Assembly: GCA_964247055.1 (NCBI GenBank)
Contig: OZ176055.1
Coordinates: forward strand, 7,130,001 to 7,194,000
Length of the DNA stretch: 64,000 nucleotides
Direction: 5' to 3'
Origin: Paragordius varius
Lineage: Eukaryota > Animalia > Nematomorpha
The notes under the pieces are model-generated. The model was given only the letters and a program-made list of their open reading frames with translations, ran no database searches and was not told the origin of the DNA. Of the stretch, positions 5,835 through 64,000 are shown one piece after another (the first letter of the stretch is position 1; every line of letters begins with the position of its first letter). The position numbers and the translations under genes were made by a program.

Positions 5835-7070
5835 TTAGGCTTCAGCAGCTGGCAAATTTCTGATAATATCGGAATCTCCTATTAAAAATAAATTAAAATT
5901 CATAAAGATTTAAGTCATAATATTTGAACACTTCGTTAGGTGATTGCAATTATAAATAATAAAAAGACAATTATAATATTGGGCCAATTATAAAAATAAG
6001 GATTCTATGGCCTTTGGGCAAATTATATAATTTAAATTTAATATTTTTTATTCAAAAAATTCCTGATATCTGCCAAATAAAAAAATATATTATGATTGAA
6101 AAATAAGCTTTAAAATATATATTTTAATGAAATTTTTTTTTATAATTTTAAAATCAGCTATTTGATGTATATAAATCATAACTTTCTATATTTAGCCATT
6201 AAGGCAGAGCTGAATGCCTAACATGCGGCTAGAACATTATGTGCGGTCCGCGAAAAATTTGGAAATTTATAATTTGCAAATATCCCCACAAAATCTTATA
6301 AACTTTATATTCTTAAAAAAATTTAATAAGTTAACCCATTGACAACAAACTAGAAAAAATTGGCATAAGTTTTTATTCAAAATCAAATATTTAAAAATGC
6401 TAATATATATTTTGAATACGGCTCGCCGGGTTTTTAAATAAGGCGGCCTGTGAATCCATTTGTGTTAGCCAGCCCTGTTTTAATCCTTAGACTGTAAAAA
6501 GTATAAGCTTTTTCAAACTAATATGTTAAGTTTAATAATAATATTTAGACAAAATAATTTTATATATTTTAATAAAAATTTTAGGCTTCCAAAATGTATT
6601 CTTTATATATATAAAAAATAATAAAGTGTAATTATATATATAAGAAAATAATTTAACATTGTTACATCAATTTATTATTTACATACCTGGATCGATGATG
6701 CTTAACATCCCCACTCGATAATACTTCCCACAAGCTGTACCCAAATCAATATTGCTTCCACTGTAGTGATGAACTCCAGTCTTAGCTAACATGGCATAAT
6801 ATTCAGCCTCACTTTTCCTATTTAATTAAAAATTGAGCAATCAATTTCAGAAGATAAGAAAATTAATATATACCGTAGTTGAGGGGTATTGTTGGCGATA
6901 ATTACTAATTTTGCTTTTCCATTACGTAAAGCTTTTAAGGTTTGTTGATAACCTAAGGAACATTTTCCACTCTTCATAACTAAAGCAAGTCGAGAATTCA
7001 TACTCTCTATAGCTTTTTTCTAAAAATTAATATAAAACAAAATATATACAGTTTTCTTTTGAGCAATCAT
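5835..7070 (-). CDS. RPL30: 60S ribosomal protein L30 (eL30), 4 exons: 7070-7050, 7019-6874, 6817-6687, 5878-5835
   Basis: Manual splicing at GT-AG sites gives [113 protein letters not shown], a clear eL30 sequence. Confidence 0.98.
6205..6477. mobile_element. Degenerate hAT-type MITE in RPL30 intron 3
   Basis: Ends CAGAGCTG...AGCCCTG, subterminal CATGCGG/GCGGTCCGCG/GGCGGCC motifs like the other hAT MITEs here. Both flanks fit NNNTANNN but do not match each other, so this is an old copy. Confidence 0.55.
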
Positions 7071-7164
7071 GCTGAAGTGGAGCTGATACAGGTGTATTAT
7101 CCGGTAGGACGATTGATAAAGAGTTACTGCAATTTTTTATTTTTCGGGACCAAATATTTCTTTT

Positions 7165-7419
7165 CTAATCCTGTAGTTCCATAAAAAATAGTTTACCTTG
7201 GCCTTTGGCTGATATTAATTGTTTTTTAAATAAATATTGCATAATTTCATGCAAAAAATCAATTTCAGACAGCACATTAAATTTAGATAACGCTTGTAGA
7301 TGATGATGTATATCGTCTAATGTTAATCCGTCTTTGTTATCCTTTAATAATTGCAAAATAACTGTAAATATTGATGAAAATATTTCTGATTCATCCCAAA
7401 TTGCTTTTTGAATATCCAT
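7165..7419 (-). CDS. Single-exon 84-aa hypothetical protein, possible winged-helix fold
   Basis: ATG-to-TAG ORF with protein-like composition (..ILQLLKDNKDGLTLDDIHHHLQ..LHEIMQYLFKKQLISAKGQGKLFF). An in-frame stop lies just upstream of the ATG and AATAAA follows ~20 nt after the stop. The fold call is inference from the pattern only. Confidence 0.55.
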   Translation of the reverse strand: MDIQKAIWDESEIFSSIFTVILQLLKDNKDGLTLDDIHHHLQALSKFNVLSEIDFLHEIMQYLFKKQLISAKGQGKLFFMELQD

Positions 7420-7772
7420 AAGTTAAAATAAAAAGCATAAGATATAGAATATATGTTTTCTAAACGCGAATGAATTCTCAAACGATTAAGGAAAAGCTAC
7501 AACCATTAAATATAGAAAAAAATATTTAATCTCCAAAAATATTAAATTTTACACAGTTAAATAATAATTTCAAATCATATAAATTTTAACTTAAAAGTGT
7601 GGGGATTTGCAGCTTCATTTAATTAGATAGCGTTTATTAAATAGAGAAGTGCTGTAAACCACCCTGCCTGAAAATTTATATGCTACATCTAAAAAGGCCA
7701 TAAAAATATTTCGTGTAATAAGCTAGCATATATTCCTTAAGTATTCAGTATAATATAATTACAATTATTTAA

Positions 7773-8223
7773 CACTTAAATTTAAATTGGGGTATTTAAA
7801 TACCCCAGACGATATTAAAATTCATATTATTAAGAAACTACAAAAAGAAACGGTTCCAATTTAAATTTATGCTATAATCCTACTAAAAATTATATTATAT
7901 TAACCAAAATATCCAAATAAAATTTTAGTTTTGTAAAAAAAATTCCGTATCAAAAAACTTGAACGCCATTTTTATTTTACAACGTTTTTGCTATCGTTTT
8001 TATTTGATTCTAAGGCTTAAATTAAGTTTACTTATTAAAACCACATTTAACATTAATATAATAGTTTTATATTTAGCTCATGAAATATGTCATAATGGGT
8101 AAATTTTTAGCTTTGGGTTTAACCCCTGAATAAGTAAAATCAAGTAATTTTGTTTGAACAAGTCTGGGGTATCCTACCCCAATTTGAATCAAAGGACTAA
8201 AATATATATGTTGTATCCAAGTG
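7773..8223. mobile_element. piggyBac-like MITE, copy A
   Basis: TTAA|CACTT...AAGTG|TTAA ends; subterminal AAATTGGGGTA..TACCCCAG palindromic motif at both ends; internal homology to copies B-E. Confidence 0.85.
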
Positions 8224-8395
8224 TTAAAATAGTTTCATAAGTTAATACACAAAGGTTTTAATCTGTAATTAAAGGACTTTATTAAATTTAAAAGTGTTTG
8301 TTTGATAGGTGTGGAAATGGGTGCTTTAATTATTATTGATTTTTTCCAATATTTAATCGATGTAATCACAATTTAGAACAAAGTTTTTTGGTTAA

Positions 8396-8924
8396 CACTT
8401 GGGATACAACACATTTATTTATTCATCTAGTTCTTGGGATATTTTAGGACCCCAGGTTTCTTTATCCATTATTTCTAAAAATATGGGAGAAATTGGAACC
8501 ATTGCAAATGTTAGCACTTATATAAATGCACCAAATATTAAAGATCCAATTAAAAAACTTGATATTACTTTTTTATCAAGGTAAATATTATCGACATATC
8601 TGCATTAGCTAAATCGAATAATGATGCAATGCATATTATTTTTTATGTCCATATCAATGTTAGATGCAAGTCAAATAAAAAATTGGCTTAGAAAATAAAA
8701 TAATAAAAAAAAACATTTATTTTGCACAAAATGTTGTATAATAAAAATGTCGTCAAAGTTTGATATGAAATTTTTATAAACCTAAATTTTATTTGAATAT
8801 TTTGGCTAATTTTTATTAGGAGAGAAACATATATTTAAATTGAAGCCGTTTGTCAGTAATTTTATAAAAATTTTAACTTACATATAGTCTGGGGAACCTA
8901 GATACCCCAATTTGAAACGAAGTG
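8396..8924. mobile_element. piggyBac-like MITE, copy B (inverted relative to A, more diverged)
   Basis: TTAA|CACTTGGGATACAACAC...TACCCCAATTTGAAACGAAGTG|TTAA; internal similarity to copy D. Confidence 0.8.
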
Positions 8925-8949
8925 TTAATTATTAGTTTATAAAAACTGA

Positions 8950-9400
8950 TATAACACTTCAATACTTTATGGGGTACAGCGTCAAAATATCAGAAAAGAT
9001 ATTCAAGACAGAGGCATTCTTTAACCTTTTTAGTAGCATTTTTAAATATTATTGACATTCCATGACTTTTTACGGTAGTTTTATATCTGAGAATAAGTTG
9101 AGAAATAGATATCTTAAAAAGTATTAAATTATAAGGCCGAATTAAAAATATGGTTTCTTTAGCTTTATAATATACGAAAAAGTTTAAATAATTGTAAAAT
9201 TGTAGAAAAGGGCTCATCTCCAACTTTTTTACAGCCTATTTTCTTTTATATTATTTAATCGTAATATTAGGCAAATAAACGTATATTATGATTAGAAAAT
9301 ATAAATAATAAACTACCTTTCAGTAGGCATTTTACGAGCAAAACTTAATATTTATTGATTTTTAAATCAGCTGTTTAGATCAATCCTGTTGTGGAGCTAT
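8950..9400. repeat. Second dispersed repeat family (related segments at ~31320-31836 and, inverted, ~55520-55560)
   Basis: Shared blocks TATTATGATTAGAAAAT, GATTTTTAAATCAGCTGTTTAG, CTCATCTC(C/G)AACTTTTT and GGTAGTTTTATATC. The 31-kb copy ends GAAGTG|TTAA, hinting at another TTAA element. Boundaries are approximate. Confidence 0.55.
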
Positions 9401-9562
9401 GTAAAACTCTAGAACATGGGTATTCAACACGCTTTGCGTGTCGCGCTATTAGATTAAAAATTAATTTATGAGATTTCACACCTAAGACCTCAAAAAAACA
9501 GAATGCAACAATTTTCCTATTTGCTATTTGGATTGACTCATGATAATATGCATCCCTTAGAC

Positions 9563-11472
9563 CAGTGGTACTCACTAAAAAAATTTGACGGGCCAAATAA
9601 AATATATATTTTTTTCGAGGGCATATTTATACTCTAAATCAGCACAATTAATTTAATGCGGATCGCATGTAAATCCAACTAAAAACTCGTTTTGCACCAT
9701 TTAGTTTAAAAAATCAAATATTTTGATAACAACATTTGATATTAACCAATAATTTTTGACAAATTTGGTTTCGCCTCATGACAGACCAATCTTAATACGT
9801 CGTCCATATGATTATCGGTTAAGCGATTTCTGTATCTATTCTTGAGATACCTTATTTTTGAATATGCTGTCCACGGGTAACTTAAGAAAAAACAGTTAGG
9901 ATAACTTGAGCACATTTTTTTATATTTTCATATTTATTTGGCACATCTTGCCAAAACCATACATATCTTTCTTCTCTTCAATTCTCCTTATATATAGCCT
10001 CCGAATCGGAATCATTTTTAAAATCTACGAATTCTTCAATGATATGCGCCTGAACAAAACCGAGATGCTCAAGTTGCTTAATATTAGATGTATCCATACC
10101 ATGGATTTTCCACGAGTTTTAAGCAATTTTTAATATTTCTTAATTCTTTAATATGAATTTCATTAATTTAGATAGCTAAATAATTGTCTATTTTAAATGT
10201 TGAAAAATATAGGAGTGTTTTATTTATAAATTCTTGTTTATATATTATTAATTTTTCTTCAAAAGCAAATATTTGATTAGCAAATTGGGTTATTATTTTG
10301 CTCCCTTAAAAACTTGTATTAAGACTAAGTCTATAAGTAAATGTCGCAAAGGTAGGCAATAAAACCCACCATTGGTCACTATTAATTTCCTCGTGAAACT
10401 TTCTGTTATCTTTAACCGTTTTGATTACTGAATTGAGTGATTCATCTTTTACATGGGAAACCAAGTTTTGCTGTTGAGTAAATATTTTTCATATTATATT
10501 TGTTTTTCAAAAGAGGGATAAATCCTTCGTTTCATAGAGGGACAGCCATCTGTGCAGATCGAAACCAATTTTTTTCATAGATATACCATTATTATCAAAA
10601 AAAGTGCTTACCACTTATTAGACATTCTTTTATTAGTTGGGAATCAATAAACGGTTTCATATTTTTTCCTAAAATATAACAAATTTCATACGAAGCTAAT
10701 GTTACAGCTTTTCCTGGGAAAAAGCTATAAAAATAATAGAATTTCTTTCTGGTATAATTCCTTAATTTTTTTTCGTTTCTTTCCTCATGATTTTCTGGTA
10801 ATTTATGAGAATGATGGATTGTAAAATTTTCAATATTGTATTTTTTTATAATTATGTTGTCCTTGCATACAAGGCAAGTATCAACATTTTTAAAAACGAC
10901 AAAGAATTTTTCTTCCCATTCCTTTTTAAAGAGCGATTTTTATCGGATAATTTACGTTTTTTAGCATTAGATGTCATCCTTTGAAATTATATTCAAATAT
11001 TATGTAAATTTTTGCAAAAAATAGGAATATAATTTGAATTATGCTAAAAAGATAGGTAAAAAATTAATGATGTTGATTTGAAAAATATTTATGGGAGTTA
11101 TAAAAAATGATGTAGGATCGCTATGAAAAGAATATGTATATGCAAGTTTGGGTGAAAAGCTTGCTTAAATACAAAAAAGGAATTCAAGAAAAATTTCAAA
11201 ATAGAAAAAAAATAGAATACAGAAACAGAGACAACGTGTGCCAAAATTTTTAAATCATTTTATGTAGGGAAATTTTTCTACCAAATTGGGAAAAAATAGA
11301 AATTACAAAATAGATCTAAAGAAAATAAATTAATATCAAAATAGGCGAAAATTCGTTTATGTGTATTTTAAAAATTCATCAATAAAAATAATAATTTAAG
11401 TATCAATATGGTCATAGGGCAATTTTAACGCACTCTTAGAGCCGCATGCGGCCCGCGGTTTGAGTATCCCTG
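9563..11472 (-). mobile_element. hAT (Buster/SPIN/GTF2IRD2-like) DNA transposon, internally deleted
   Basis: Perfect 8-bp TSD CCTTAGAC at 9555-9562 and 11473-11480 (NNNTANNN, Buster-type). Imperfect TIRs CAGTGGTACTCA and TGAGTATCCCTG. Contains transposase remnants. Confidence 0.92.
9720..10977 (-). pseudogene. Decayed hAT transposase
   Basis: Minus-strand fragments broken by stops and frameshifts: MTSNAKKRKLSDKNRS..EWEEKFFVV..CLVCK (BED-like N-terminus), KLVSICTDGCPSM (catalytic D motif), FWQDVPNKYENIKKCA and KNRYRNRLTDNHMDDVLRL (dimerisation domain). Confidence 0.9.
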
Positions 11473-11933
11473 CCTTAGACTTTTCAGTACATTATTCATA
11501 AAACATTATTCAAAATATGTAGAATCGAAAAAATTATCACCGCCAGATATTGTTAAAAAGTTGCTAAAAATATTAATGATTTGTACTTAAATTTCTAAAC
11601 TTTCAAAGGAATTCAATTGTAATTTTAGCTCATTGGACTGTATAAGCTACATATTTATATGAGAATAAATTTTTTTCCAAAATACAGCGTAGTTATAATT
11701 GAACAGTTTAAATACAAATTATAAAACTTTTTTAAAGATAGTATTTTTAATGAAAAATTTTGTATGTAAGGAAAATCTTTCTTTTTATATTGACCATTTT
11801 TATGATTTTACCGTATAACAAATTCATTTTCGTTCGTTAACTAATATTATTGTCCGAATCGATAGTTCAATGATTATAATAAATAATAAAAGAATTTATT
11901 TTATTTACAAACTTTAAATTTATTTGTACATAT

Positions 11934-14900
11934 TTAAGACTTTTGTAGTCTAACAAGGTCTCGATTTTTTCCAGTCAATCTTTTTTGTTTGGGGTCAAAG
12001 CCTTTTTCAACGGATCCAAAAGTGGCCCAATCAGGAGTCGGAGCCGAGTATCTTATGGAATTTAAATGCTGGTTAATTAATTCTCGATCATGTTGAGATA
12101 TCAGTGTAGGATAATCAGATGATGCAATTTTTCCATTCGATTCTGAGTTTTTAGAGACAGGCTCATTACTTGGGATTGTTTTGTGATGATAAGCATCGTA
12201 ATAAGTTATAGCTTGTTGATTAAAACGACCATAATCTATCCATGTGTGCCAAACACCTTGGATTTTAAACTATAAAATGAAAAAAATATATATAGAGTCA
12301 AACAATTTAGTTATTATTAGCATTTAATCTAAAAGTAATTTTGTAGGCAATTTACTTTGGTATCGGCAATCAAAATGCAATTAGAGTGTTCATGTTCACA
12401 TGCCACTTCATAATTTGGTATTGAACCGTTAGCGGTTACTAAAATTCCACAATATAATAATTGAAATTTGGACATTGCAAAACAATTAAAACATCTTTCC
12501 CTCAAAAAAAGTTAATTAAATAATTTTATTGTTATAGCTACTATAAATTACTTTTATGATAGGGGTGTTTCAAAGCAGATATAAGGGTGAGACCAAATGC
12601 TAAAACATCAGTGTGCCATGGAATATCAGTCATTGTAAGGTGATTTTTCTTTTTTTCGTTACTCTTAGCCGTGTTTTCGGGATCCGTCGAAGCATCCCCA
12701 CAATATGTTACACCCTAAAATTTAATAATAAATAAAAATAATTTTGTAAAAATTACGATAAAAATCCCAAAATCTCTATAATCTTACCTTAATTTCAATG
12801 AAATCGGGTATGCCTAGTTTTATGAGATCAACATAGTTACGGACATCCTCTCCAAATCGATCTAGGTAGTCGCGCTTTAATTCTTCAACCTATACGCATC
12901 AATTAAATTATATTCATATTCTTTGGCAAAATAACTTTAGTGTGTAGATTTAACAAATTATTCAAATAAACTATTTCACAAACATTTTTAATCAAATCCC
13001 CAGGGCATTGTAATGGATCATCAGTAGATAAAGATGAATCTTGAGCGCAAAAATTCCATTTTTTCACGAGCGTTAAACGATAAATGGTTCGCGTGATACC
13101 TTTTTTCTCAGCAATAGCCTCTAACGAGCCAATAAAACGTTCCCAGAAATCCCGATTAAGGGGTCTATCTATAGCCTTAAGGGACATTTTATCATGCGCA
13201 TCTATACTAACGTACAATTGCGTAACTGGTCCTATACTCCTGTCATTGTAAATAGTGGAAAATGAGATTTAACTAAACATAAAACGTTAAAGACTCTTTA
13301 TATAAAAGAAATTTTTTTCTTTTTTGTCCATAACATTCATAATTTAAAACAAAAAATTGAATGTTACCAATTTACTTCTCTATTCTTTGCAATTTTTTTA
13401 GAGATATATAGATAAGCCATTTTCTTTTAATGCTCCTGAATAATTTTAAGTAAATTTTTTCATATGATTACAAAAAAGTGACACGAACCTAGTGAAGTTT
13501 ATTAAAAATATCCATTTTTCATAAATACCTAACATTACTATTTTCTCGCATTGTTAATAATACAAGTTCACTAAAATAAAAATAAAAAATAGGCAACAAT
13601 CCCAAACACTTTCTAAAGATCTGTAGCACGCCTCATTCTAAAACTGAATTCTATTAAAGTTTTTCACCAAAAATGTTTGTAAAAACCTAATTTGTTCGGG
13701 AAACTGGGCGTTTGTAACCAAAAAAGTTGAAACACCGCCCTGGTGCAAGAGTTGAACAAGTTCATTTATTCGGGGGTACATAATGGGTTCTCCCACGAGC
13801 GATAAGGCACAATGTTTAGGTTGCATAGCCGCATCAAAACGGTCTGGCGTTACACCAGGTACACCTTTTAACTGTTTTATCATACCTTTTTGGGTGATTT
13901 AAAATAAAAAATATGGTATATATTTTAAAAAAAACTACCAAATATAAGGAATAACATTTATTAAGCATGATTCGTAAAACTAATTTATTAAGAATATATA
14001 AATATAGATTACGAATTTAAAACTCAATAAAAGCCCATAAGGAAACATAAGGTGTAAAAGGTTTAAAACTTATTGTAAGAAATCACCATTGACACAAATA
14101 TAATCGAATATAATTACAAAATTATTATATTTTAAGGTTATATTTATAAATTATATTTTACAGCGGTTATTACACAATTTAAAACACTATAATGATTTAA
14201 AAAAATATCTAACCTTTATGTTGTGCTATAATCTGTTCATAAATGTATTGTGGTGGATCCATTTTCCAACGCCACTCTGTACCGACTGGATTGGTGTGAT
14301 GCCTGGAAAAAAGTATATATTTTTGTTTGTAACATTTTATTTTTTTTGTATTAGTATCAATCAAATTTCAGTATAATAACTATAGATAATTAAATAATCC
14401 TAACTTCAACCCAAAATACGTAAAATTTTGGTTTAATTAACAGTTTACCATTAAATACAAACGTTTAAATGTTGTAATATCATAAAAATAATATATGTAC
14501 ACATTATACTATAAAGGCTTACAAAACTTGTTATATTTTAAAAATTATGCCATGCATTTAATGCTTCTGCAACTAATATCATCAAAATTAATTTTAATAT
14601 AGGATATATAAAAACAATACTCAATATAAACCTATCTATTTCTTGGGAATATACATTAACCATGTAGAGCTTAAAAACTAGATCATTATTAAGAAATCGG
14701 AAAAAGGTATGATAAGCTAGAGCTAATCAATAAATAAAAAATTATATTGTAATGGTAAATGACGGATTGATTGTGTTTTGTAAAAACAGTTGTTAAATCC
14801 GTAAGATAATAAGCGAAAATTAAATAGAAAATCGATTGAAAGTTATAATTATTAACAGAAATTATAAATGATATGTGAAACCCTTTCGTCAATAGTAATC

Positions 14901-17900: not shown

Positions 17901-18367
17901 CTTGTTATAATTCAGACCATATGACGTATCGCCTAATCCAATTACACAATATTTGAGATGCTTTAAAGCACCAGAATCTATCCGAAAATCATATGGTGCA
18001 GTTTTAATCCATTCAGAAAACCAATTCAAATTATCTGGAGCTTTCCCTCCATTAATTGTTGGTATCATAAATACACAATAAGCTTTCTAAAATTTTGTTA
18101 ATCCATTTAAATAAAACTTCTTCGAGCAAAAACTCGGGATCATATTCTGTAGCACATGTTACTGTTAGAGAGTCAAAAATAGATAAATACTTAATTTTAT
18201 CAGCCAAAAAATTAGCTAGAGTCTATAATAGAGTGCCTATATTATATTAAAACCTCTGTATTTCCATATTGTGAACCGTATATAATTTTCAACTTATAAA
18301 GCGCTTTTTTGGTATTTTTTGTAAAGTTGAATTTATTCCATATAAAATTTTTGTTTGAAATTAAAAT
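11934..18367 (-). CDS. TYW1: tRNA wybutosine-synthesising protein 1 (flavodoxin + radical SAM), multi-exon; first exon(s) not located
   Basis: Flavodoxin motifs KIIYGSQYGNTE/TLANFLA and YCVIGLGDTSYG; radical SAM region KLCRWT..GRGGCYK..TPSLACANKCVFCWR/HHTNPVGTEWRW; HCALSLVGEPIMYP, YVSIDA, PDFIEIKGVTYCG, ACEHEHSNCIL, WHTWIDY, TPDWATFG..GFDP; stop at 11934. Confidence 0.96.
17260..17461. mobile_element. hAT-type MITE in a TYW1 intron
   Basis: CAGGGATGTCCAACATGCAGCCC...ATGCAGCCCG..GTTGCACACCCCTA; flanks GATTAATG and TACTAATT (5/8 match, central TA). Confidence 0.7.
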
Positions 18368-34000: not shown

Positions 34001-37000
34001 GACCAAAAAAGTAAATGATAACCCTACAGCAGGTGAGAATGATGATAAAAGCGTAGCAAAATCGGGTTACATAAAATATGGGAAAGTGTATGGCAAAGGG
34101 ATTGAAAAAATCAAATATTACAACTATTCATCCGAAGCTAGCAGTAATTTTAATCAGAAGCAATCACCGCTAAAAAATAGGGATCCCATATCCAATTCTC
34201 ATACTGGGTCAGATTTCTTGCCATCCACACATTACTACAGTTCCGAGGATGATGGAATTGATGAGGAAAACGATGGTTCAGACCAAGCTCACCCCAAAAT
34301 TGAGTTTATGGATGAAAAATTGTTTGATGCAAGACGACGTAAAATTATCCAATCCAAAATAGAGGAAAGGGAACACGCTTTCAAAACCAAACTACAAAAT
34401 GGAAAAGACAATGTGCCAGAACAAGATCCGATTCTTGAAAACTTACGCAAAATACAGGAAGAGGAAGGCACAGGTGAGTTTTTTTATTCACCACCTGTTT
34501 ATCGTGTAAGCCATTATGAAGAAGATCCCAATTTCAATGCAAAAGGTTATGTTCCCTACAAAAGCTTCGATAATGGGAATGGAAATTTGCAAGCGCAAAA
34601 AGATTACACGGATGCAAGCATGTTCAAAAATCCGGAAAATAAAATTAAAAGTACAACCCTACAATTTATTTTTAACATGTGTAAGTTATTTTCAAACTGA
34701 ATAATTGCTTGTTTACAGATATACAAGTGAAATGTGACCTCTTCAAGGACACGATGGAAGTCAAGTTAGATTTTAATGAAGCTTTCGATGGGATAATTTA
34801 TACAAAGGGCTACTTCAAAGGTAGCAAATGTAAAGCGTATGGGACTGGGACAAAACAAATGTTTTTCACGTTTCCTTTGGATGCTTGTGGAACTGAGATT
34901 AAGAATCAAAAAGTATGTGAGATATTTGAATTTTTTTTAACAAAATCATTTAAATAAAATGTTTTCAAAACATTTCCATGCAATCAATCAGTTTAAAGCG
35001 AGTGATGACGCATCTGCTGGAAATGGTGTTGAAAATCAGGCGGCCTCTGGAACAGATTTAGGAAACGTCGGAACTGACAATGAAATAAACACGGGTGGAG
35101 ATATATATTATTTCAACACAATCATCATTTTGAATGAGGCTAAATGGGCCATCTTGGATGGTTTGGATCGAGCTTTTAAGATTAGCTGTCATGTTGGGAT
35201 GGAAGGCACCAAAAAAATTCAAAGCTATTTACGAGTACCGTAAGTTTTATTAACCAAAATATTTTGTTTTTTTTCCATTGGCAATTTAGATTGATAAGCT
35301 ATGGATTTTAATAAGGTTGGTAATATTTAGGGAATAGGCAACTGATGTATCAATAATAACATTAATATGCAAAACAATGCACCCCTTTTAAACCTGTTTT
35401 GTGAAACTGGTAATGCATTAGAAGCTGTATATATATTTTAATTTTGCAAACAATATTATAATGTAGCCTTAGTGATGTAATTTTATAAAATTTGGTATTT
35501 TTCAAATGATATGTTATAACATACTGCTCATTAAACCTAGAAATAATATTTACTTCCATACTTATAAGGATCGTTTAATAAGCGTAGCACTATTTAAATT
35601 TTTGTCACGCTGTCGTCAAATATGTAATTTCCTGAAACACCTTCTAAAATATTTAAAAAAATATGTGACAAAATTAAAATTAGTCATATTCAATGAATTT
35701 TAATAAATAAGCCGCTTTTCCACTTCAGACTATGTTTCGAATCGATAAACTATGTATGATGAAGAGTAAAGAATTATAAAAATCTAGGCCTCTTAATCAA
35801 ATACCGGAATCCCAGCTAGTCGCAACTATATTTATTATTATACAAAGTCTTTTTATAATGGTTGGAAAAAATATATATTAAGAAAAATTTATCAGTAAAA
35901 TTTTAAAATATTAATAGTTTTAAGGTCCGACAAAAGTTGATTCACAAACGACAGGAATAAAACGTTGTTAAGGAACTCTTTTTGACACCGCACTCGATTA
36001 TAACCACAGCAATAAAACTTTTTAGAATCGGTGTCGATGTTTATTATTATGTTTTTTATTTTGGAATTAGTATGTTTCACACAGAGGAAACAGCACCCTT
36101 TGAAATGACCCTTCCTGAGGTTTGGATGAAAATTGTTCAGGGGCGAGATCCGTTTCAGCGTGGCAGTGAAATCTTGGAACTCGGGAATGTAGGATCTCTT
36201 GTGGTCTTGCTGCATGATATAACTTGTAATAATATAATTTATTTCAATATAATTAACCATTTTTTTTCATATTATGATTTATTTTATATGTTGTTTGGAA
36301 TAGGTTCCTACGATTTGTACGTTTTCAATTGTTTTGCTCATGATGGCTACAACCAAGACAAAGTCAAATTAATTGACGAAAATGGGTAATATCGTGACAA
36401 TTTTTACATATTTGATATAATATGTTAAAATATGCATACATAATTTATATAACTTAGTTGTCCAGCTGAAAAGAATTTGATTTTACCGCAAGTCATCGAA
36501 AGAGCTAAATGTAAAACTGATACAAATGCATTGGAAAATGATATTAATATCCAAACCAGTCCCCAAAATCAAGATACCCTAAGCTTGTCTCCCTTCAAAA
36601 TTTTCAAGTTCCCTGACCAATCTCAAGTTTATTTTGAGTGTCATGCCAAAATATGCTTCTATGATTGCTATAAGGTAAATTTTTTTATACAGTAAAAATT
36701 GAAACTACACAAATAAAACGTAAAAATTAAAAGACAAATATTTTTGCTAAAAAGACTGCTATACTAAATCTTATTTCATACATAAACTTTAAATTACCAA
36801 TTTATATCTCTGATTCCCATTCCCACAAACACAATAAGTTATATTCAAACAAATCAAATCAATAAGTATGCTTTTAGAAAAAAAAATGTGTCCACGTTTT
36901 GTAATAGTTCATTATTTTTATAACTTTTTTTGTTCACAGCCAAAATGTGGTAATGAAGAGTCCCATTTACCAAGCTCTGAATTTGCCAGTGATGATAGCT

Positions 37001-46200: not shown

Positions 46201-49200
46201 AATTTATTTTAGGGTGAATTCGAATTGTTCAAGGGTGAATTTCAAGTGTAGTTCGTATACTCGGTATGCCTTATGCTTGCTAATATAGTGTTTTGGATAT
46301 TTTTTCGCTTTTTGGTAAATAGGGTTATATATTCATCAGTGATAATCATGGATAGGCATATATATTGTTTTGTTTAAAACTTAAATATGGAAAATATTGT
46401 TTAATAAGTATTTATAAAAACGTATTATTGCTAATTTTGGTAAAACACAATGAGATATGAAAATTAATATGATTTATTAGTTTACGTTATTTGATTCGCA
46501 AAAGTATTTTATTTTTATGTTAAGTTTGGTTAAAAAAGGTATGTGTTTCTGGAACCAAACCATAAAATGACATTAAATAGCAGTCATTAAACTGCTTATT
46601 TACCAATTTTTATGTTTTAGCAGTCAAAAATATCAAATAGCTTGTTAAACCAGAGTAGGACATAAATAAAATATAGCTATAAATATAAAACCTTTAGCCG
46701 ATGTAGACGAATGTGAGGCGGTATGAGCGTGTGCATGAGCTAAAGCCTTAAGTTCAATGCGGATATTTTTAACTTTATCCAGGGATGTTTCAATCCGCTC
46801 ACGAAATTTGACATGTGTTAAAAGTTGCGTTTGAAGAGTCACCAAAATTTCAGCTTTGTCACGTGGCGTCAGTCCAAACACAGATGATTGGCTGCCCGCT
46901 AACGATCCAATCAGATCGGGTCGTCTGCACTTGAAATCCAATCCTGGATCATCACGTGACACGTAGGCACCACGTTGCTGATGTCTAAATACACCAAATA
47001 AAAATCAAATAATTAATAATTGCGAAAGCGCAAAAACCGAAAATTATTTAGGTAAAATATTTCGGTATTAACACTGATCATTTTTCAATCATATTAAATA
47101 TAAAATATATATATAGAAATTGCAAAAGAATCAGAATAATCCGAAAATATTTGATCATAATATTATTTATTGAGGCGTTATAAATCAATTTGTCTTTAAA
47201 TTAAAACTCGTCTCCAAAATATTAAACCTGTAAAGCACATTTTTAGGATGGCCATAGCCACCGGCGCTCGCAAAATGAAGGCGTAAAAGTTCAGTAATGG
47301 TAGATGGTTTGGAATCTCTTTGTACCAATTCACGTAAACTCACGCCATAATGTACGAGGGAAAGTCCGCTATCCCATGTAGCTTGTTGAATTATTTGAGG
47401 TTGATTTTTAAGTTCCTCTGTATGAATGTTTAAAATAAAAAAAAAGTTTGTAACAAAGAAGTGTCATTTATGTAGCAAAAAACAAAATTTTACCCAATAT
47501 TTCATCTGGGACATCCAAAAATTCGTTGGAAAACTCATCATTGTACTGCGTTTCAAGTACGGCCAAAAGGTAACAATTAATTAATTGAAATAATGGTCCA
47601 TATACTGGTTGATTTGTTAACAAAGCCTCTTCAATCATTTCTAATAAAAAGGGGGTCAAAAAAAGAGTCTGACATGAATGAAATAAAATAACTCTATATT
47701 ACCCTAAAGCAGGAGTGTTAACCACAAATAGCCTCGTGAGCCGCATTTTGGATTGAAAAAATTCGCAAAATATATGGGCAATAACAAATATTTTTATAAA
47801 TTTTGAACATAAGGCAAAACTATTTACTTAACAATTTTTGGTAGGTCATTGCCAAAATTTGGAAAAACCTAATCAAAAATTTGTTTAAATCAATTCTATT
47901 TATATTAAGTATAATTTTATATTTAAGATTACTCTCGGACTGCAGGAATATTTTAAAGAACCGCGTTTTGTACACCCCTGATTTATGGTATAAATTTTAA
48001 GGGATGCTTACCAAACGTTAACCAGGACAGAGGATTTAAATCTATATCGCTATTGGTAAAGGTACTAGTGGAATCATTCAAACCCAAAAAAGAAGCTTTT
48101 AAATCAATCAAATCGCCAAAAGCCAACCCAAATTGGTATATGGTGAGGGCAAGACCAAAAGTGTCACAATCCAATTTTGTTGGTACGGTATATTCAATCC
48201 AACTTGGAAACGGTTTAAGATCATCACATTCCAAATCATCTCGTGGTTTTGACCAAGTTTTTAGAAATTCGGCACGGAGTTTGGCTTCCTCTCGTTTCTG
48301 CATCAAAGAATAATTATATAGTTATAAGGAAAACAAAAAGTAAGAAAATAACATTTAATTAAAGTACCTGTTCTCTTTCCATTTTTTTGAGCTCGGCCTC
48401 TGAAATTTCTTTTGGTTTGTTTGTGGGTTCGCCCGCGTTATCTTTTGTTTGAGACGTGGGCATAATTGAACTATAATCTAAATGAAAATTAATTTATATG
48501 TTAGTAAATAAAACAAAAGATATATCTAATAACACTACCATGTTCTAGGCCATTATCAATAGAATCCAAAATAACCCGAGTTTCTGGCGACTCTTTAGTC
48601 AATTCGATTGGCAGAGGAATTTGCGGATTGAATTGAGGAGGCACATCACCGAAAAAGTCGGAAAATCTAGCTGCTTTAAGATTGTACTGCTTAATAAATT
48701 CGGGCTAAAAAATTAATTAAATAAAATCAAATAAATAATTTGATAGTTTATATAAAGACAAACCAACCTTAACAATTCTTAGCTTAAGTTTTGGATCCAA
48801 CATTGTATGATTTTTAAGGAATAGCTTATTTTTAACGCGCGTGAAGACACTTTTCATCCGTTGAACGTTATCGGGTTTTACCCAAAAAGCTTTTCGACTC
48901 CCCTGAGACTGTATATTCTTATCATCTGGTGCAGGGTAGGATGGGCATTCTCGAACTAAATATTTGAATTGATTAGGATGTAAAGAGTTTATAGGGGTAT
49001 TCCGAGTACTGGTTGTGGTATCATCCAATTCTCTGTAAAACAAATTTATTAATAAAATTTAAGATGGAAATATGTTGTTTTTTTACTTAACAATTGTTCG
49101 TTTTTTGAAACTTTCTTCAGAGTTTAGGGGTTGTACTTGAATGATTTGACATGTTTTTCTAATAAGATTAAACAAAATTTTACTTGTTAACGCCCAACAT

Positions 49201-49594
49201 AACTTGAACGATTTCCCCGATAAAAAACCTATCTTTAACATATCCAAATATATCGTCGCTCATTTCATTGAAAGTGGCTCTATGAGTTAATGGAACCAAA
49301 TATAAAAGAGGTTTTTGCAATGCATCGGGAAATTCTTCCAAACTTTTAAGAGATTTCTGTTCCGATTCCAAAGCCTCTTGATATGTCAATCCACATCGAC
49401 CAGATATCGAACATGTCCATACCAAACTATTGCACACAATGACTCGTTCGAAAAATTCCCTAAAATTTAATAATAATATACTCATAATCCCGAAATATTT
49501 CTTTCGTCAATGAACAGAAAAATACTTCTTCATTGTCTTTCAAATCTTGAGGAATGGATTTTTTCGAAAATGCGTGTTTCTTTAAAAGAGGCAT
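40243..49594 (-). CDS. BAZ1A: BAZ1A/ACF1 ISWI chromatin-remodelling subunit (WAC, DDT, WHIM/WSD, PHD, bromodomain), multi-exon
   Basis: N-terminus MPLLKKHAF..EEVFFCSLTKEIFRDYE/EFFERVIVCNSLVWTCSISGRCGLTYQEALESE (WAC); DDT region WSKPRDDLECDDLKP..FGLALTIYQF; PLGRDRAYRRWW; LLDLEERIYTNGLG; PHD CILC..LLLCDSCNKGYHTYC..IPEGDWYCFNC; bromodomain HPDSWPFLEPV..PDYYDVIKEPMD..NCRTYN. Confidence 0.97.
46045..46324. mobile_element. Short TTAA|CCCT...AGGG MITE in a BAZ1A intron (related fragment at ~27540-27790)
   Basis: TTAA|CCCTA...TAGGG|TTAT ends. TTTTCGGGCTAA and GGTGAATT(C/T)..AATTGTT(C/T)AAGGG blocks are shared with the 27.6-kb region. Confidence 0.55.
47710..47980. mobile_element. hAT-type MITE in a BAZ1A intron
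   Basis: CAGGAGTGTTAAC..GAGCCGCATT...CCGCGTTTTGTACACCCCTG; flanks with central TA; resembles 31852-32155. Confidence 0.7.

Positions 49595-50634: not shown

Positions 50635-50636
<2 letters not shown>

Positions 50637-50678
<42 letters not shown>
50637..50678. repeat. (TA)n microsatellite
   Basis: About 20 uninterrupted AT dinucleotides. Confidence 0.98.
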
Positions 50679-50680
<2 letters not shown>

Positions 50681-50739
50681 CATGGAAAGAAAGGTATTTA
50701 TACTTTTGTGGTAGTTGCTCAATATAGAAAGGCGCAAAA

Positions 50740-53650: not shown

Positions 53651-53672
53651 CTCTATATAAGAATGGAATTAA

Positions 53673-57100: not shown

Positions 57101-58075
57101 GACGCGTCGAAACGATTTGTCGAAAAAAATGGTTTCTATGTGGCAAACAGCTTTGTTTTTTATTTAATTTTTTAAGAAGAGCCCTACAAAATCTTTTAAA
57201 AGTCATTCGATTCCAATATTTTGATACATTCTGAGATTACATAAAAATGATTATAGCACAAACTACAATTATGACTCGAATTTTCACTTACATACGATTT
57301 TATTAGCATAAAATAAACTCATGTCATTTTATTTGTTATTTTCAAAATACAGGGCCATGTAAATGACCCGGATCAATCATTCAATGACTCAAAATTGCAT
57401 TAATATTCTATGCCCCGAAAAACCAAATATTTAAATACATTATGAGTTAGAAGTAGGAAGCAAATAGAAATCACTCAAGTTGGGCTTATTTACTTGGCCC
57501 CAAATTTTTTGCCTATCCATAAATTATATTAATATTTTAAGCCATATAATAACATTATTTTTAATTATTTTTCTAACGATATCACCATCAATCGTTGATA
57601 TTGCGCAGAATCAATTAAATCTCGCAAATTAAATTCTTAAACTCATGTTTGCAATTCACGCATTGCTGGCCAAAAGATTGACTTTAATGAAGGCATCTCT
57701 AAATATTTATGAAAATAATAAAAAAATTTATTATCTAGAGTGCAAGTCTGTGTTTAGTTATAAAAAAAGTAAAAACTTGCAAATATAATTGCGTCTAAAC
57801 AAAAGAATATATAATGCAACTAAGCACTATAAAAATGTAAATGCAGTCATTATACATGATTGGTTGAAAAATTGAGATTCTAAATATAAATCTAAAAATT
57901 TACAGTAATGTATTGCAATAATTGGACTAAAAATTTTGTATTTAAATCTATTGCCATAATAATATAATAAATACACATGTAAATATGTTAAATGCATAAT
58001 CAAATAAATATCAGGTAATTAAAAAAATATGTATAGCACCATCAAGCATAATGTCAAAAACTGTCGCGTTTACAT

Positions 58076-61000
58076 TCACATCAAGACAAAACATTTCCCA
58101 TCCTTTAAATCATATCCACTTGTTGAATATGATTTTCTAAAATAAATAATAGTTATGAAATATAAAAATTCCAACAAAAATATAAAAAATGAGTTTACTC
58201 AATTTCCATAAATGTTGCCATAGTGTGTTTGATCAAGTTTTTAGCTCCATGATTGTTAGCGAATGGTAGATGTAATTTTCCATAACTTTTTATATGTATA
58301 TCCCAGGCCATCCCTTTCTGAGATTCTTTTTCCAGGCCACTATCAGTAGAGTCTAAAGAAATGGTTCGATTTAACCCAGAACCAATAGTGTAGGCATTTG
58401 AAAAAACTGTGATTTGTGATTCCCCCACATATTGTAGCCTGGGGGAAATACAGTAAAAATTAAAATTATGCTTAGAAACAACGTAAAAATTAAAAACCAT
58501 ATTTTTTAATTCTAAATATATAAAATAGATCTCTTTGTTTTGATTTGCAAAGTAACGAATAGAAATGATTGTTTATTCCACGAAATTATAAAATCTAAAT
58601 TCTGATTATATAGTTTATAGATAGATCTAGGCGATCTTTTCTAATAGTTGACTTTTCTATGTTTTTCCTTAATAATTTTATTCATTACTACAGTTATGAA
58701 TACAGGGTAAAAGTCACTTTTTCTTTTTTTCTTATATAAATATACCATCCTGACTGACGCGTTAAAAAAGATTATTAAACATTAGCATTAAAGGAAAGAA
58801 AATAAAAAAAACCTAATTTTAAGGTTCATAGTGTAATTTTGCCTGAAAAGATCCATAGATAGATGGCCATAAGCTGATGCCCGAATCAGGCCATACACAT
58901 TAGAGGTGACTGGAAACCCGTTTGCCAAGCAAAATATATTGTTTTCATCATGGATCAGAAAATTTATCTATGAAAACAATTTGAAAAATACAATCATATC
59001 ATATAACAATGGATTGAGTAAACATATGCTCGTACACCTATTGTACGACAATAAATTTGCATAGCATAAAAGTAACTATGTATGTTTCAAATTATATATG
59101 TAACCGTTTAAGAAATTGTATCCTATTTTATTTTGTAATTTTCGTAAAATAGAAAAATGCAATTATTTTTATCTCTATAAAATTATCAAACGATCTATAT
59201 GATAAAATTTGTTTCTATAATAAAACTCAAAAGCGGAGTTGATGTGCAAATAAATAATATCTCTGCACTTTTCCAATAATCCCCCCCTCAAATAAATGCC
59301 CAATTAGAGTTAAATTTTTGACACGATCAAACGAATTAGACTAATGACTTATACATGTACAGTTCGTGACCAATAATATTCACACAAACGAAAATATGAT
59401 TTTAACCATTAAATCGATCAAATTAGTTTCAATTTTGAAAATATTTTTAAACAATAAACGAATTCGATATAATAAAAAATTTCATTTTTAAAGTAAACAT
59501 ATCAAAACATGTTAAGTATTTCTTTTTATCCACACAAGTTTCGATAGCCACAATACAAAAGTAATATATTGACCGAAAATTAATTTACATCAAAAAAGTT
59601 TTTATATCCCTCATCCATGGTTTCCGTATTAGTTATTTGCAAGGCTAAATCTATCAAATCTTGTTTCCCATGTACGAGGGAAAGGGGCTGACCCTCTAAA
59701 CTTAACATACGGTTGAGTAAGGCCTCACTTAAATCAGGGTAGTCTCGTGTCGAAGGTAACTCCCCTACATCTTGGTGTTTATGAAGATCCAACATTTGAC
59801 CTAGGTTTTAAAACAATTTTTAAAACTTTTTTATTTTAAAATAATGTCATTTTAAAGCACAGTACTCATATCAAGGCCCATGGGCCGCATGCGATCCTAA
59901 AAATGCTTTTTTGTGACCCTAAATTGTTAATTAAATTTTTTTAAGCATTTATTTGAAGCATAAATATTTAAATCGGTATTATATACCCTAGAGACAAGAA
60001 AATTGTTTTTTGGCCCGTAAATTTTTAGTGAGTGCCAATGTTCTAATATATTTGAAAAAGATACTTTCTAACATATACAACCACCGTAGTCAAATCTCTT
60101 TTGTTAAGCACACATTATTTTTGTAAGTAACCCATTCAAAATTATTTTGAAACTTTCTTAATACTTTAGTGCCAAAACTATCTAACCATAAAAGTGCATC
60201 AAACAGATTCTTAAAAATAAAATATGCATAAAAATTTCTAACAGTTAGCTATTACAAATGATTATATTGAAATATCCTTATAAACTCATTTATTGGCATA
60301 TACAATTAACACAAGATTGGTTTGTGCGATCCCATACTTTCTTAAAACTTAGAAGTGTATATAAGAAAATAAGAGCATGTTAAAATACCCATAGTTGAAA
60401 AGGCTAAGGTGATTTCTGGTGATGATTTAAGATTGGATCCAAAGCTTTTTTCGAACGCCAAAAAAGATAATGCAGCAAATCCATTAACAATTTCGTGGAT
60501 ACCCTGAGCCAGTCCGGATGTTTTTAAATCAATCTAGGGAGAGATAGCCAAAAATATTAATGGTAAAGAAATTGTTTAAAAACCTGTTATCAGGATTGAA
60601 AAACAATATGTATAAAAATTTATGAGAGACGCATAATAAACGTTGCTTACTTTTAAAATTGGTTGTCCTTTAAGCAAAAAGCCGATATTTACGTGTGTAG
60701 GAAATCCGGAAAAATCTTTTTGATAATCAACTTGATAAGAAAAATCTATAATAAAAATATTTCTGAAAATATCCTATTCGCCGGGTTAATAATCACTTAG
60801 TATTAATAATACCTTTTGTGATTGGTGTAATAATGTATGGTTTTGTGGTGGCTGAATTACCAAATAACATTAAATAGGGTTTTTGGAAACGGTTTGCAAT
60901 CATTCTATACATATCGCTACATATGCAGAAAAACAAGTAAATTAGATTTATAAAATTATATGTAATTAAACAACCTTACTGCATACTTTTCTCTAGTTCT

Positions 61001-64000
61001 CCGTTTAAAGGATTCATCTGTGTTAAGGAATTTTATAAAACTATGAAACACATCTTGAAATAGTTTTAAACTGTTCTTATGGCTATAGTGAGTTGACTTA
61101 TCGGTCAATTGTTTTTTGATGAATATTGAAATAAAAATTCGATTTAGTATTCCTTCAATCATAAATGGACTTCTATCACATTTTAGGGCTAAGTCAAAAG
61201 CTAAAGGAACAAAACTATCAAAGCGACCATCCGTATGCAATGTGAGTATATTAGCTATCCCATGTAATACATTATAGGGGTGTATGTTGTTTAATAACGA
61301 TTCATCATCTATCATACCAGGGGACGAAGGTATATAAAAATTCATATTAGAAAGCATTTCTAACGGATTTCGTCTAGGATCCTGGGCATTTAAATAATCT
61401 ATTTTTTCCATTTTATGGAGCATTGAGCACGGAAATTTCGATATGGCTTCAATGATATTTGTGAGAACAGATGAGTGATTCCCATAGTGCTTATTATTTT
61501 TATTATCGTGATAAGATGCATATCTCAAGAGTTGATATGTTAGTAATGATAAACTTTGATACGTTCGTACATTAGCCAGTGCGTTATGTATAATAATTAA
61601 CTGATCTAAAATGTCAGTATTTTGTGCATTTATATCCTCATATAATTGCTTGTTTAGCATTGTCAGTCGATGTGTAGCAAACGTGTAGAATTCGTTAATA
61701 AAATGATACTTTGCATCCTACACACATATAAAGTTATATGGTATTTAGGGTTCTTACCAATATAAAGAAAACTTGTAACAATAGTATGTTCGCAAAATAA
61801 ATTATAAATAAACAATGTACAAATTTCGAAAAAATTGTAACCTTTGAAACAAGGCAATAAGTATTGTAGTTACATTCTTTCCAAATCAAAACACTAGCCA
61901 AGTTTAGAAGGGAAGAAAATCGTTGGATAGAAAAATCATTGGATAAGGATTTGGCACTTTCAAAGTGAGAGTTTAAATGTTCCTAAAAAGAACAATACAC
62001 CTAAATATATAAGCTAACACATACAAAGATTTTTTGTTAAATCTAACAATTTTTTTGGCAAAATTTTGGGTTATAATATAAAACGCATTATTTTGCATAC
62101 TAATATATCTTTTATGATAAAAAGATTTTTTGTTATATCTAACATTTTTTTTGGCAAAATATTGGGTTATAATATAAAACTCATTATGCATACTAATATA
62201 TCTTTTATGAGATCAATGGTAGAATAGCCATTTGACAGAGTGCCAACGATTGGCCTTATTTGGGCAAGAGCTAAAACACTTCGGATAAAATACGGTTTAA
62301 GCTGTTCCTTTAAATATTCGTCAAAGTTGGGCTTATCATTCAATTCGTGTTGTACTTTGGTATAATTGAAAATATCAATATTAATATAATTATTCTTAAT
62401 TTCCGTTTTTGCAGGTTGAGAAAGTTGTAAAAGATATTGAGATGCAAATTTGAGCGTTGAAGACGTTTGTGCAGACAGAGTGATTTCTATCATCACTGGT
62501 CTTGATATGGACAAAAAGAAATGTTTTAGGACTCATATAAATTTTAAATGAGCAAATCAAAAAAACCTTACAGTGTTTGAGGCCATTGATCTAGGACTTT
62601 ATGAAAGATTTTAAAAATTTGAGATTGTTCAGAATCATCATTTTCCTGTAGTTTATATCCTTGTCTTAAAAGTTTTATCAGGTGAATTTTTTGATGTTGG
62701 ACTTCAAAGCTAAGAGGATTAGTTGAAAGATATTTGGCCAACACTTCGTAATGGTGCAGAAATTCATTCTTCAATATATTTATAAATATAATTTTTCTAA
62801 GCCTTTTAACCATAATATAACATTAATATTATAAATAATTTTTTACAAATATTTTAGGCTAATGTAAACGGAAATTTAGGTAAAACGGACAATAATACCT
62901 CAGAATCTATATTTTCTGCATTTTGTTTTACATGTAAAGTTGAATCATGGTCGGGATTAAATTTAAGGGTTTGAGAATTCATTTTAACGGAATATTTGGG
63001 ATCAATTTGGAGTAAGGCTTCATTTAAATTGGATGCACCTTCGATTATTTCTTGACGGGTTAATCGTTCAACTTTAACCAAGGTCAATTTTTGGCTAAAT
63101 ATATTTAAAAAATCTTGATAAACATTTTTTAAACATGTCAAATTGTGTTAATTATAATTCTAAAGTTGCGGATAAGCTTTTGATCATAAAATTAAGGACC
63201 TGATATCTTATTTGATTTTGTTGATGGATCAAATAAAAAGTTATATCAAAATTACCATAAAGGCAAATATTGGGCACATTATGCCATAACTAAGAAGTTA
63301 GTTACCATTTAATTACATTTTCAGCAATACATGGTAATCTCGTGTAAAATCATCGTTTTTGTTAAATTAGACTTATATATATTCAACAAAAGCTTTTGGG
63401 AGCCTTTTTTAGTTAAAAAATTTGCATTTTCTTGCATCTTATGATAAAGGTTAATTTTTGATTTGGTAGCTCATTAAATTTGGTAAAAAGGTGGAATCAT
63501 ATATATAGTCATACTTAACGGAACAATTAAATATTTTAGTGTAAGGTGATAAGTAAGATGTTAGTATAGTTCTCGATTGACTGCGAACACTTGAAAAATA
63601 TGATAAAGGATCATTGTTTTTGAAAAGAAAATGCGTTTTATCCAACGGATTAAAGTCATACAGCGTTTGAGTTGTGGTATACATATCTAAACTTTTGATC
63701 TAAAAAATAGTGCGCTATAGAGTTCAATATAAAAAAGTTTTAAAAAATAAGTTAAACTATGCTTCGATCTTGTGAGAAAGCAGAAAATGCTGGATGATGA
63801 CAGAATTTATTTTTGCGAATTTTATATCCGGTTTTGTACACATAATTGACTTCGCAATCATGCTGAGTGTCTCGCTACAAAGTTAAATACGAAACTACGA
63901 ACCTCGGTCATATTATGATTGGTAAATTGAAATAAGCTTAAAATTCCCTTTTTAATCTGCAGCTCAAACGGACTCTCCATATTATTGATAAAAAGTGGAG
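58076..64000 (-). CDS. MTTP: Microsomal triglyceride transfer protein large subunit-like (large lipid transfer protein family), 5'-partial, multi-exon
   Basis: Spliced segments follow recalled MTP in order: QIKKGILSLFQ..E/RDTQHDCEVNY (ENIKRGLASLFQ..EVDISGNCKVTY); SQKLTLVKVE (SKQKLELKTTE); an alpha-helical domain; IDLKTSGL (VIEAQGL); NRMLSLEGQPLSLVHG (KMLSASGDPISVVKG); LIHDENNIFCLANGFPVTSNVYG ([22 protein letters not shown]). Stop TGA at 58076; the frame is open at the window edge. Confidence 0.82.
59858..60040. mobile_element. hAT MITE related to the 9563-11472 element, in an MTP intron
   Basis: GGCCCGTAAATTTTTAGTGAGTGCCAATG is the near reverse complement of CAGTGGTACTCACTAAAAAAATTTGACGGGCC at 9563; the other end carries GTACTCA..GGGCCGCATGCG. 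Confidence 0.75.
62025..62210. repeat. Tandem duplication (~93-96 bp) spanning an MTP exon-intron junction
   Basis: AAAGATTTTTTGTTA..TTGGCAAAAT.TTGGGTTATAATATAAAAC.CATTA..GCATACTAATATATCTTTTATGA at 62025-62117 and 62121-62210. Confidence 0.92.

Follow-up and report, generated by a model that had tools for sequence, protein, structure and literature searches.

A putative class of ultra-short (21–31 nt) GT-AG introns in the genome of the hairworm Paragordius varius

Introns shorter than about 30 nucleotides (nt) were previously thought to be absent from animals, and in a survey of 51 animal genomes introns below 30 nt were found only in myxobolid myxozoans (median 22–27 nt) and in Dicyema japonicum, the authors predicting that more cases would come to light; nematomorphs go unmentioned in the main text (Hadjez et al. 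2026, PMC13644364). The present analysis concerns a 64,000-nt stretch of the hairworm Paragordius varius (assembly GCA_964247055.1, contig OZ176055.1, positions 7,130,001 to 7,194,000), here called the window, in which eight GT-AG segments of 22–38 nt had been predicted to be spliceosomal introns of five unrelated genes: RPL30, TYW1, a BAZ1A-like gene, a ZP gene and a gene taken for ‘MTP’. No report of such introns in hairworms was found in the literature searched, which did not cover Cunha et al. 2023, and the word ‘intron’ is absent from the Gordionus genome preprint. As judged by comparison with related sequences, the observation in the window is partly confirmed and appears largely right, and a discrete class of ultra-short GT-AG introns, best bounded at 21–31 nt, would be a real and genome-wide feature of this animal. 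What is new here, relative to the known kind, is that such introns form a minority in a genome that is rich in repeats and also has long introns.

Myxobolids (Henneguya, Thelohanellus, Myxobolus) resemble the hairworm in having GT-AG introns of ~20–30 nt at conserved positions with weak splice-site motifs, in keeping a canonical U2 and U2AF, and in that short introns have short neighbours; in both myxobolids and Dicyema, again as in the hairworm, a weak A patch replaces the branch consensus and polypyrimidine tract (PMC13644364). They differ in that theirs are compact genomes, poor in transposable elements (TEs), of tiny parasites, with the low median intron length given above (PMC13644364), whereas in the hairworm, a macroscopic worm, the tiny introns are a discrete minority beside 53–86-nt introns and kb-sized, repeat-bearing introns, and T is retained at acceptor positions −3 and −5. 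Ciliates, nucleomorphs and dicyemids, named in the original prediction as the groups known for such introns, do fit, but the myxobolids, with the shortest known animal introns, were missing from that list (PMC13644364). Dicyemids share with the hairworm a bilaterian, parasitic character, introns below 30 nt (in their case most of them) and a conserved exon-intron structure, the median intron being 27 nt in Dicyema and 57 nt in the orthonectid Intoshia (Zverkov et al. 2019, PMC6543705). In dicyemids, however, two thirds of all introns fall below 30 nt, whereas the hairworm has whole genes without any (0/22 introns in CCT genes). Dicyemid introns are reportedly also the subject of studies by Ogino (2010) and Lu (2019).

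Introns of ciliates and nucleomorphs likewise fall into a narrow range of lengths close to a strict minimum and are handled by a conventional spliceosome (in part PMC13644364). Unlike the hairworm, these are unicellular systems of near-uniform intron length in which no long introns coexist with the short ones. Introns measure ~25 nt in Paramecium, 15–16 nt in Stentor and 18–21 nt in the Bigelowiella nucleomorph. In Caenorhabditis elegans the intron mode is near 50 nt, with a UUUUCAG acceptor and no branch consensus. Nematodes, the sister phylum, are like the hairworm in their T-rich acceptor hexamer and weak branch signal, but their short introns are about twice as long, and the hairworm acceptor is mostly TAG rather than CAG. 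The hairworm Gordionus montsenyensis (GCA_954871325.2) shares the RPL30 and ZP intron positions and has a similar base composition (26.9% G+C, compared with 28% in the window); its orthologous introns, however, are 39–49 nt long in RPL30 and 43–260 nt in ZP, none in these two genes being shorter than 39 nt.

Read letter by letter, all eight segments start with GT and end with AG on the strand of their gene, have the predicted lengths, and join open frames on both sides in compatible phases. For tests of the junctions, exons were searched singly, and were joined only locally (30 nt per side of the candidate junction) to read the junction peptide. Exon-by-exon Pfam and tblastn matches confirmed four of the eight:

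7020..7049, minus strand: RPL30 intron 1, 30 nt, phase 0; in frame, containing a stop, and placed after codon 7, between MIAQKKT and KKAIES.
18223..18253, minus strand: TYW1 flavodoxin-domain intron, 31 nt, phase 0; the upstream exon covers positions 1–11 of the Flavodoxin_1 profile.
18087..18117, minus strand: TYW1 flavodoxin-domain intron, 31 nt, phase 0; the 35-amino-acid (aa) exon before it equals profile positions 12–46, and residue 2 of the next exon is position 47.
49460..49481, minus strand: BAZ1A/Acf1-like WAC-domain intron, 22 nt, phase 2; the exons cover WAC_Acf1_DNA_bd profile positions 1–15 and 17–101, with codon 16 split.

Further downstream the BAZ1A-like gene has a WSD match at 45.5 kb and a Bromodomain match at 40.2 kb, and the tiny introns of both BAZ1A and TYW1 sit in the N-terminal domain.

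In RPL30, tblastn of the eL30 proteins of Gordionus (P0001) and Priapulus (P0036) left a 10-codon gap with a stop exactly at 7020–7049. Exon 2 begins at position 2 of the Ribosomal_L7Ae profile, and the best protein match, an annotated protein of Gordionus sp. m RMFG-2023, was 91% identical over exon 2. The same gene has two longer introns, both placed by tblastn:

6818..6873, minus strand: RPL30 intron 2, 56 nt, of the middle size class.
5879..6686, minus strand: RPL30 intron 3, 808 nt, with a repeated element.

A spike in read depth at 6200–6399 falls inside intron 3. All three positions are common to three species: in P. varius, Gordionus and Priapulus, respectively, intron 1 measures 30, 49 and 111 nt, intron 2 measures 56, 39 and 352 nt, and intron 3 measures 808, 45 and 1478 nt. 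Because longer introns occupy the position of intron 1 in both Gordionus and Priapulus, the tiny RPL30 intron appears to be a shrunken ancestral intron.

Beyond the window, which lies at C6:7130001–7194000 of the assembly (110.6 Mb, 44 contigs, labelled here with the prefix C), the whole assembly was searched with the Ras and Cpn60_TCP1 profiles, and matches were recorded per exon with their profile coordinates. For neighbouring matches, intron length was predicted as the genomic gap plus three times the profile overlap, GT..AG pairs keeping both frames open were then taken, and in-frame or double cases were settled from the sequence itself and from the junction-peptide test. A Pkinase profile table was too sparse for use (124/502 candidates scored), and an attempt to detect frame-restoring segments without homology, in which GT..AG was set against all other end dinucleotides, met too many chance solutions in this AT-rich DNA to be of use. 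The profile searches gave 23 further introns of 21–31 nt, each with exactly one GT..AG solution, distributed over nine genes of the Ras superfamily (contigs C1, C2, C3 and C5; the subfamily names are presumed ones, after human sequences):

Rab18-like gene (C5:5361113–5361730): tiny introns of 21, 21, 22, 22 and 22 nt; no other resolved.
Rab8-like gene: tiny introns of 27, 29, 28 and 23 nt; no other resolved.
Rab11-like gene: tiny introns of 25, 24 and 25 nt; no other resolved.
Rab10-like gene: tiny introns of 23, 26 and 31 nt; one other of 1391 nt.
Rab6-like gene: tiny introns of 27 and 31 nt; others of 693 and 306 nt.
RhoA-like gene: tiny introns of 23 and 24 nt; no other resolved.
Ral-like gene: tiny introns of 21 and 24 nt; no other resolved.
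Two further Rab-like genes: tiny introns of 25 nt and of 26 nt; no other resolved.

Once trimmed, the exons of the Rab11-like gene cover positions 2–66, 68–101, 103–131 and 133–160 of the Ras profile, positions 67, 102 and 132 being split codons, and those of the RhoA-like gene cover positions 1–47, 48–96 and 97–159. Two Rho1 proteins from other animals, aligned by tblastn, revealed a 23-nt frame break and an 8-codon insert in the RhoA-like gene. Its first tiny intron (23 nt) lies within one codon of a 3097-nt intron of Biomphalaria; the second has no counterpart in Biomphalaria. Orthologous introns are to hand for RPL30 (in Gordionus and Priapulus), for ZP (in Gordionus) and, to within one codon, for the first RhoA-like intron, and because the RPL30 positions are common to these species and the first RhoA-like intron lies so near that of Biomphalaria, at least some of the tiny introns would be shrunken ancestral introns.

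The length spectrum was discontinuous. Among the 70 introns resolved outside the window, 23 measured 21–31 nt, none 32–52 nt, 11 measured 53–86 nt and 36 measured 246–2976 nt. The mode of the tiny class was 22–25 nt, with nothing below 21 nt, and one apparent 46-nt intron proved to be a pair, of 23 and 26 nt, flanking a 61-nt exon. The observation that tiny introns coexist with introns of 55–100 nt and with kb-long, TE-filled ones was borne out, the tiny class sometimes sharing a gene with 53–86-nt and kb-sized introns. A majority of ultra-short introns in a compact genome, the pattern of myxobolids and dicyemids, was not what was found in this sample: 36/70 introns were at least 246 nt long, and most were at least 53 nt.

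The class had also been described as genome-wide, which held in that tiny introns were present on several contigs; they were, however, unevenly spread and strongly clustered by gene, accounting for 23/48 introns in the Ras family and 0/22 in CCT genes, while the proteasome profile table suggests at most one among about a dozen. Neighbouring introns of one gene formed 13 tiny-tiny, 4 mixed and 10 long-long pairs (Fisher P=3e-4), and in mixed genes the tiny introns mostly came first (30/56/808 nt in RPL30; 27/31/693/306 nt in the Rab6-like gene).

For the remaining members of the original list, the evidence is of other kinds:

34651..34718, plus strand: ZP/cuticlin-like gene intron, most likely 68 nt, phase 1, placed by Gordionus orthology.
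49159..49183, minus strand: BAZ1A-like intron, 25 nt, phase 2, placed by frame geometry, seven residues beyond the end of the WAC profile.
63875..63902, minus strand: candidate intron, 28 nt, phase 0, in a secreted, large-lipid-transfer-like (‘MTP’) gene, placed by frame geometry.
60763..60796, minus strand: candidate 34-nt intron, unverified, in the ‘MTP’ gene, placed by frame geometry only.

It seems somewhat better than an even bet that part of this list does not consist of tiny introns at all, the ZP intron being 68 nt long, the 34-nt ‘MTP’ candidate being exon or gene end or using other sites, and the class ending at about 31 nt, in keeping with the absence of verified introns of 32–52 nt among the 70 outside the window. 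In the ZP gene, the 38-nt version (34681–34718) uses an in-frame GTAAGT donor 30 nt downstream of 34651. The orthologue in Gordionus (P0121), whose ZP-N exon is 78% identical to that of the window, reads KIKN followed by IQVKC across a 184-nt intron placed after ATTAAAA and beginning with GT, and the only relative found for the N-terminal exon likewise comes from Gordionus sp. m RMFG-2023. In the window the homologous donor, GTACAA, lies at 34651, and splicing from there to 34718 yields an identical junction peptide, PENKIKNIQVKCDL. Because donor context and junction peptide agree in this way with the Gordionus orthologue, which points to the upstream donor, the ZP intron is most likely 68 nt long (34651–34718) rather than 38, although GTAAGT at 34681 is the stronger consensus donor, is in frame, and may be used as well. 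The RPL30 and ZP orthologues, 27 kb apart in the window, are 9 Mb apart on Gordionus OX940787.2.

The 34-nt ‘MTP’ candidate is longer and more GC-rich than every verified tiny intron, and it could equally be exon or gene end, because the upstream frame stops (TGA) at the proposed donor. The identity of the ‘MTP’ gene itself found no tool support. Its 234-aa exon (60959–61660, minus strand) had no relatives at E<=0.001 among 1.84 billion representative proteins, nor any in the annotated Gordionus proteome; ten of its exons had no meaningful Pfam match; the two exons beside the 28-nt segment had no sequence match in the PDB; and the ESM Atlas returned helical-repeat noise only. The gene begins beyond the end of the window, with a signal-peptide-like exon. 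Around the 28-nt candidate the spacing E-x6-C..Y fits an MTP motif. At the 25-nt BAZ1A intron the upstream frame meets a stop at the donor, and the 24-aa exon downstream of it is presumably homologous to the human sequence. The exon-level evidence thus stands for the RPL30, TYW1 and 22-nt BAZ1A introns; the 25-nt BAZ1A and 28-nt ‘MTP’ candidates are placed by frame geometry and presumed homology; and because the ZP intron is likely 68 nt and the 34-nt ‘MTP’ candidate unverified, the upper part of the predicted 22–38-nt range (34–38 nt) is unsupported, the well-supported class being 21–31 nt.

The tiny introns very probably belong to the ordinary U2-type GT-AG spliceosomal kind and were shortened, in this lineage of nematomorphs, to near the spliceosome minimum. 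Splice signals were compared between 30 tiny and 34 longer introns. Tiny introns have an exon-final G followed by GT[A/T]T at the donor, and T at −3 (80%) and −5 (77%) at the acceptor, where C at −3 occurs in only 2/30; A occupies positions −10 to −7 at 47%, compared with 27% in longer introns (P=0.001). A branch motif, TTAA(C/T/A), had been proposed for most of them. TTAA[CTA] starting 8–16 nt from the 3′ end was found in 12/30, compared with 7.8 in composition-preserving shuffles (P=0.05), and in 7/23 of the independent Ras set, compared with 6.2 expected (P=0.42). Because the independent set showed no enrichment over base composition, the motif is unsupported; the A-rich patch at −10 to −7 is supported instead. 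Under this explanation, the standard spliceosome would excise introns of 21–31 nt by intron definition. It would recognise them by the short donor GT[A/T]T after G, by a branch adenosine within the A-rich patch ~7–10 nt upstream of the acceptor, and by a T-rich acceptor, (T)TNTAG, the introns being too short for a polypyrimidine tract. Their origin would lie in deletion-driven collapse of ancestral introns, the same introns being 39–49 nt long in Gordionus.

A survey of splicing factors for loss or divergence had been suggested, and the part of it that covered U1, U2, SF1 and U2AF found the expected components. The canonical branch-pairing box, GTAGTA, is present in the U2 genes, as is the canonical ACTTACCTG in the U1 genes; SF1-HH was matched on C5 above cut-off (74.9 bits), and C8 has four U2AF-large-like exons in collinear order, none of which reaches the cut-off for the whole protein. 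Among these genes there is no sign of a reduced or unusual spliceosome. In all, 46 U2 small nuclear RNA matches were found in the genome; more than 20 U2 or U2-like copies of graded score form a 270-kb cluster at C3:257–527 kb, and other U2 copies lie near contig ends (C8:6857, C6:8570, C4:7260).

More doubtful is a dedicated recognition mode, by a variant U1, by U1-independent recognition of the 5′ site or by SPF45-type factors, which would explain both the size class and its clustering. T at donor position +4, which removes a U1 base pair, is found in 21/30 tiny introns (70%) and in 11/34 longer ones (32%; P=0.005); the length spectrum has its gap at 32–52 nt; and one U1 copy (122 bits, C6:606254–606419), 1.4 kb from a canonical copy within the U1 cluster at C6:565–633 kb, carries ACTTACTTG at its 5′ end, with a change from C to T at the base pairing exon −1. 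Most of the U1 and U2 copies found are canonical, however; the donor difference could reflect simple drift towards AT where constraint is relaxed; the variant U1 is known as a gene copy only; and in myxozoans and Stentor a conventional spliceosome removes introns of this kind (PMC13644364). A dedicated mode is accordingly improbable. A slightly less remote version, though still unlikely, would have two splicing regimes side by side, with individual genes subject to the minimal-intron one, which might depend on a variant U1 or dispense with U1. The details of such a minimal-intron regime (lengths of 21–31 nt with a floor of 21, GTWT donors without U1 pairing at +4, and a branch A 7–10 nt from TAG) are likewise only a slim possibility as a description of a separate regime.

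Several points weigh against the explanation by ordinary U2-type splicing. The sequencing runs that cover the RPL30 intron (X1, X2 and X4) behave as DNA, and the putative RNA run X6 gave no match over 5400–11399; a run search with the RPL30 stretch returned five runs containing it and five of the same label, possibly RNA, that share no words with it; the only hairworm protein returned by the eL30 search was the annotated one of Gordionus, none being derived from transcripts; and a search of the genome for an RPL30 retrocopy, a natural cDNA, returned only the gene itself. Four in-frame tiny introns, their lengths divisible by three, contain no stop: Rab11-like, 24 nt (C3:8184200–8184223), RhoA-like, 24 nt (C5:8097808–8097831), Rab8-like, 27 nt (C2:7965250–7965276), and Rab18-like, 21 nt (C5:5361261–5361281). 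Because they carry no stop, their retention would be invisible in the reading frame, and only conservation of the G domain argues for removal; if retained, they would lengthen the GTPase core internally by 7–9 residues without exposing the transcript to nonsense-mediated decay. Furthermore, the sample outside the window is weighted to one protein family, and half of the eight listed introns are of the kinds described above, two placed by geometry (BAZ1A 25 nt, ‘MTP’ 28 nt), one unverified (‘MTP’ 34 nt) and one probably mis-delimited (ZP).

That the segments are an assembly artefact, being long-read indels or collapsed sequence in uninterrupted genes, retains almost no credibility. The assembly is AT-rich, and in such DNA long-read indels are common, but the segments are 21–31 nt long rather than 1–2 nt, 30/30 are GT..AG, and introns stand at the same codons in other species. 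The runs covering the RPL30 stretch (5400–11399) have the properties of DNA (even intergenic depth, single-nucleotide polymorphisms (SNPs) at half depth, enormous depth over repeats), and their short-read contigs offered an independent check for indels behind the frame break: contigs of runs X1 (6868–7486) and X2 (6958–7182) span the 30-nt segment with zero differences, and a contig of run X4 crosses it, differing by two SNPs and a gap; at the segment, the contigs of the three runs list neither a joint nor an indel. Since the X1 and X2 contigs reproduce the segment exactly, the assembly-indel reading is removed for RPL30, where an artefact is effectively refuted. Excision at the DNA level, as of the internal eliminated sequences of ciliates, is just as hard to credit: the size range overlaps that of the shortest eliminated sequences of Paramecium, and programmed DNA elimination exists in some nematodes, but the ends are GT..AG rather than TA..TA, whole-animal DNA contigs from three runs retain the RPL30 segment with no joint across it, and the positions are ancestral intron positions.

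Taken on the comparative evidence, the interpretation that came with the original prediction is thus partly supported and would be right at its core. The hairworm would be the third independent animal case of introns below 30 nt, after the myxobolids and the dicyemid. It would also be the first from Ecdysozoa, the first from a large animal and the first from a genome whose pre-mRNAs can combine 22-nt with kb-sized introns. As one pre-mRNA can hold both, intron miniaturisation would be separated from genome compaction, and the hairworm could serve as a natural system for studying what determines the shortest intron that an animal spliceosome can handle; lengths of 39–49 nt at the same sites in Gordionus suggest shrinkage recent enough to trace. 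Tool defaults ignore such introns (STAR has a minimum intron of 21, AUGUSTUS of ~39), and gene models, BUSCO scores and gene-loss claims for the phylum therefore need re-examination. If the class is real, introns of this size are passed over by standard aligners and gene finders, and the ‘rampant loss of universal genes’ published for Nematomorpha could therefore in part be an artefact of annotation.

Some further features were noted around these genes. An 84-aa open reading frame (ORF) at 7165–7419 (minus strand) ends 90 nt upstream of the RPL30 start and is probably the last exon of a neighbouring gene. From 7600 to 11400 the window consists of very high-copy repeats, with a summed contig depth of 10^4–10^6 compared with ~200–600 in unique DNA, and within them lie hAT-like C-terminal ORF remnants (9375–9915, minus strand). 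Elsewhere on the same contig, a CCT-like locus at C6:5283631–5285832 (minus strand) has three profile matches in one 757-aa frame, with 1.4 kb between matches expected to lie ~100 residues apart.

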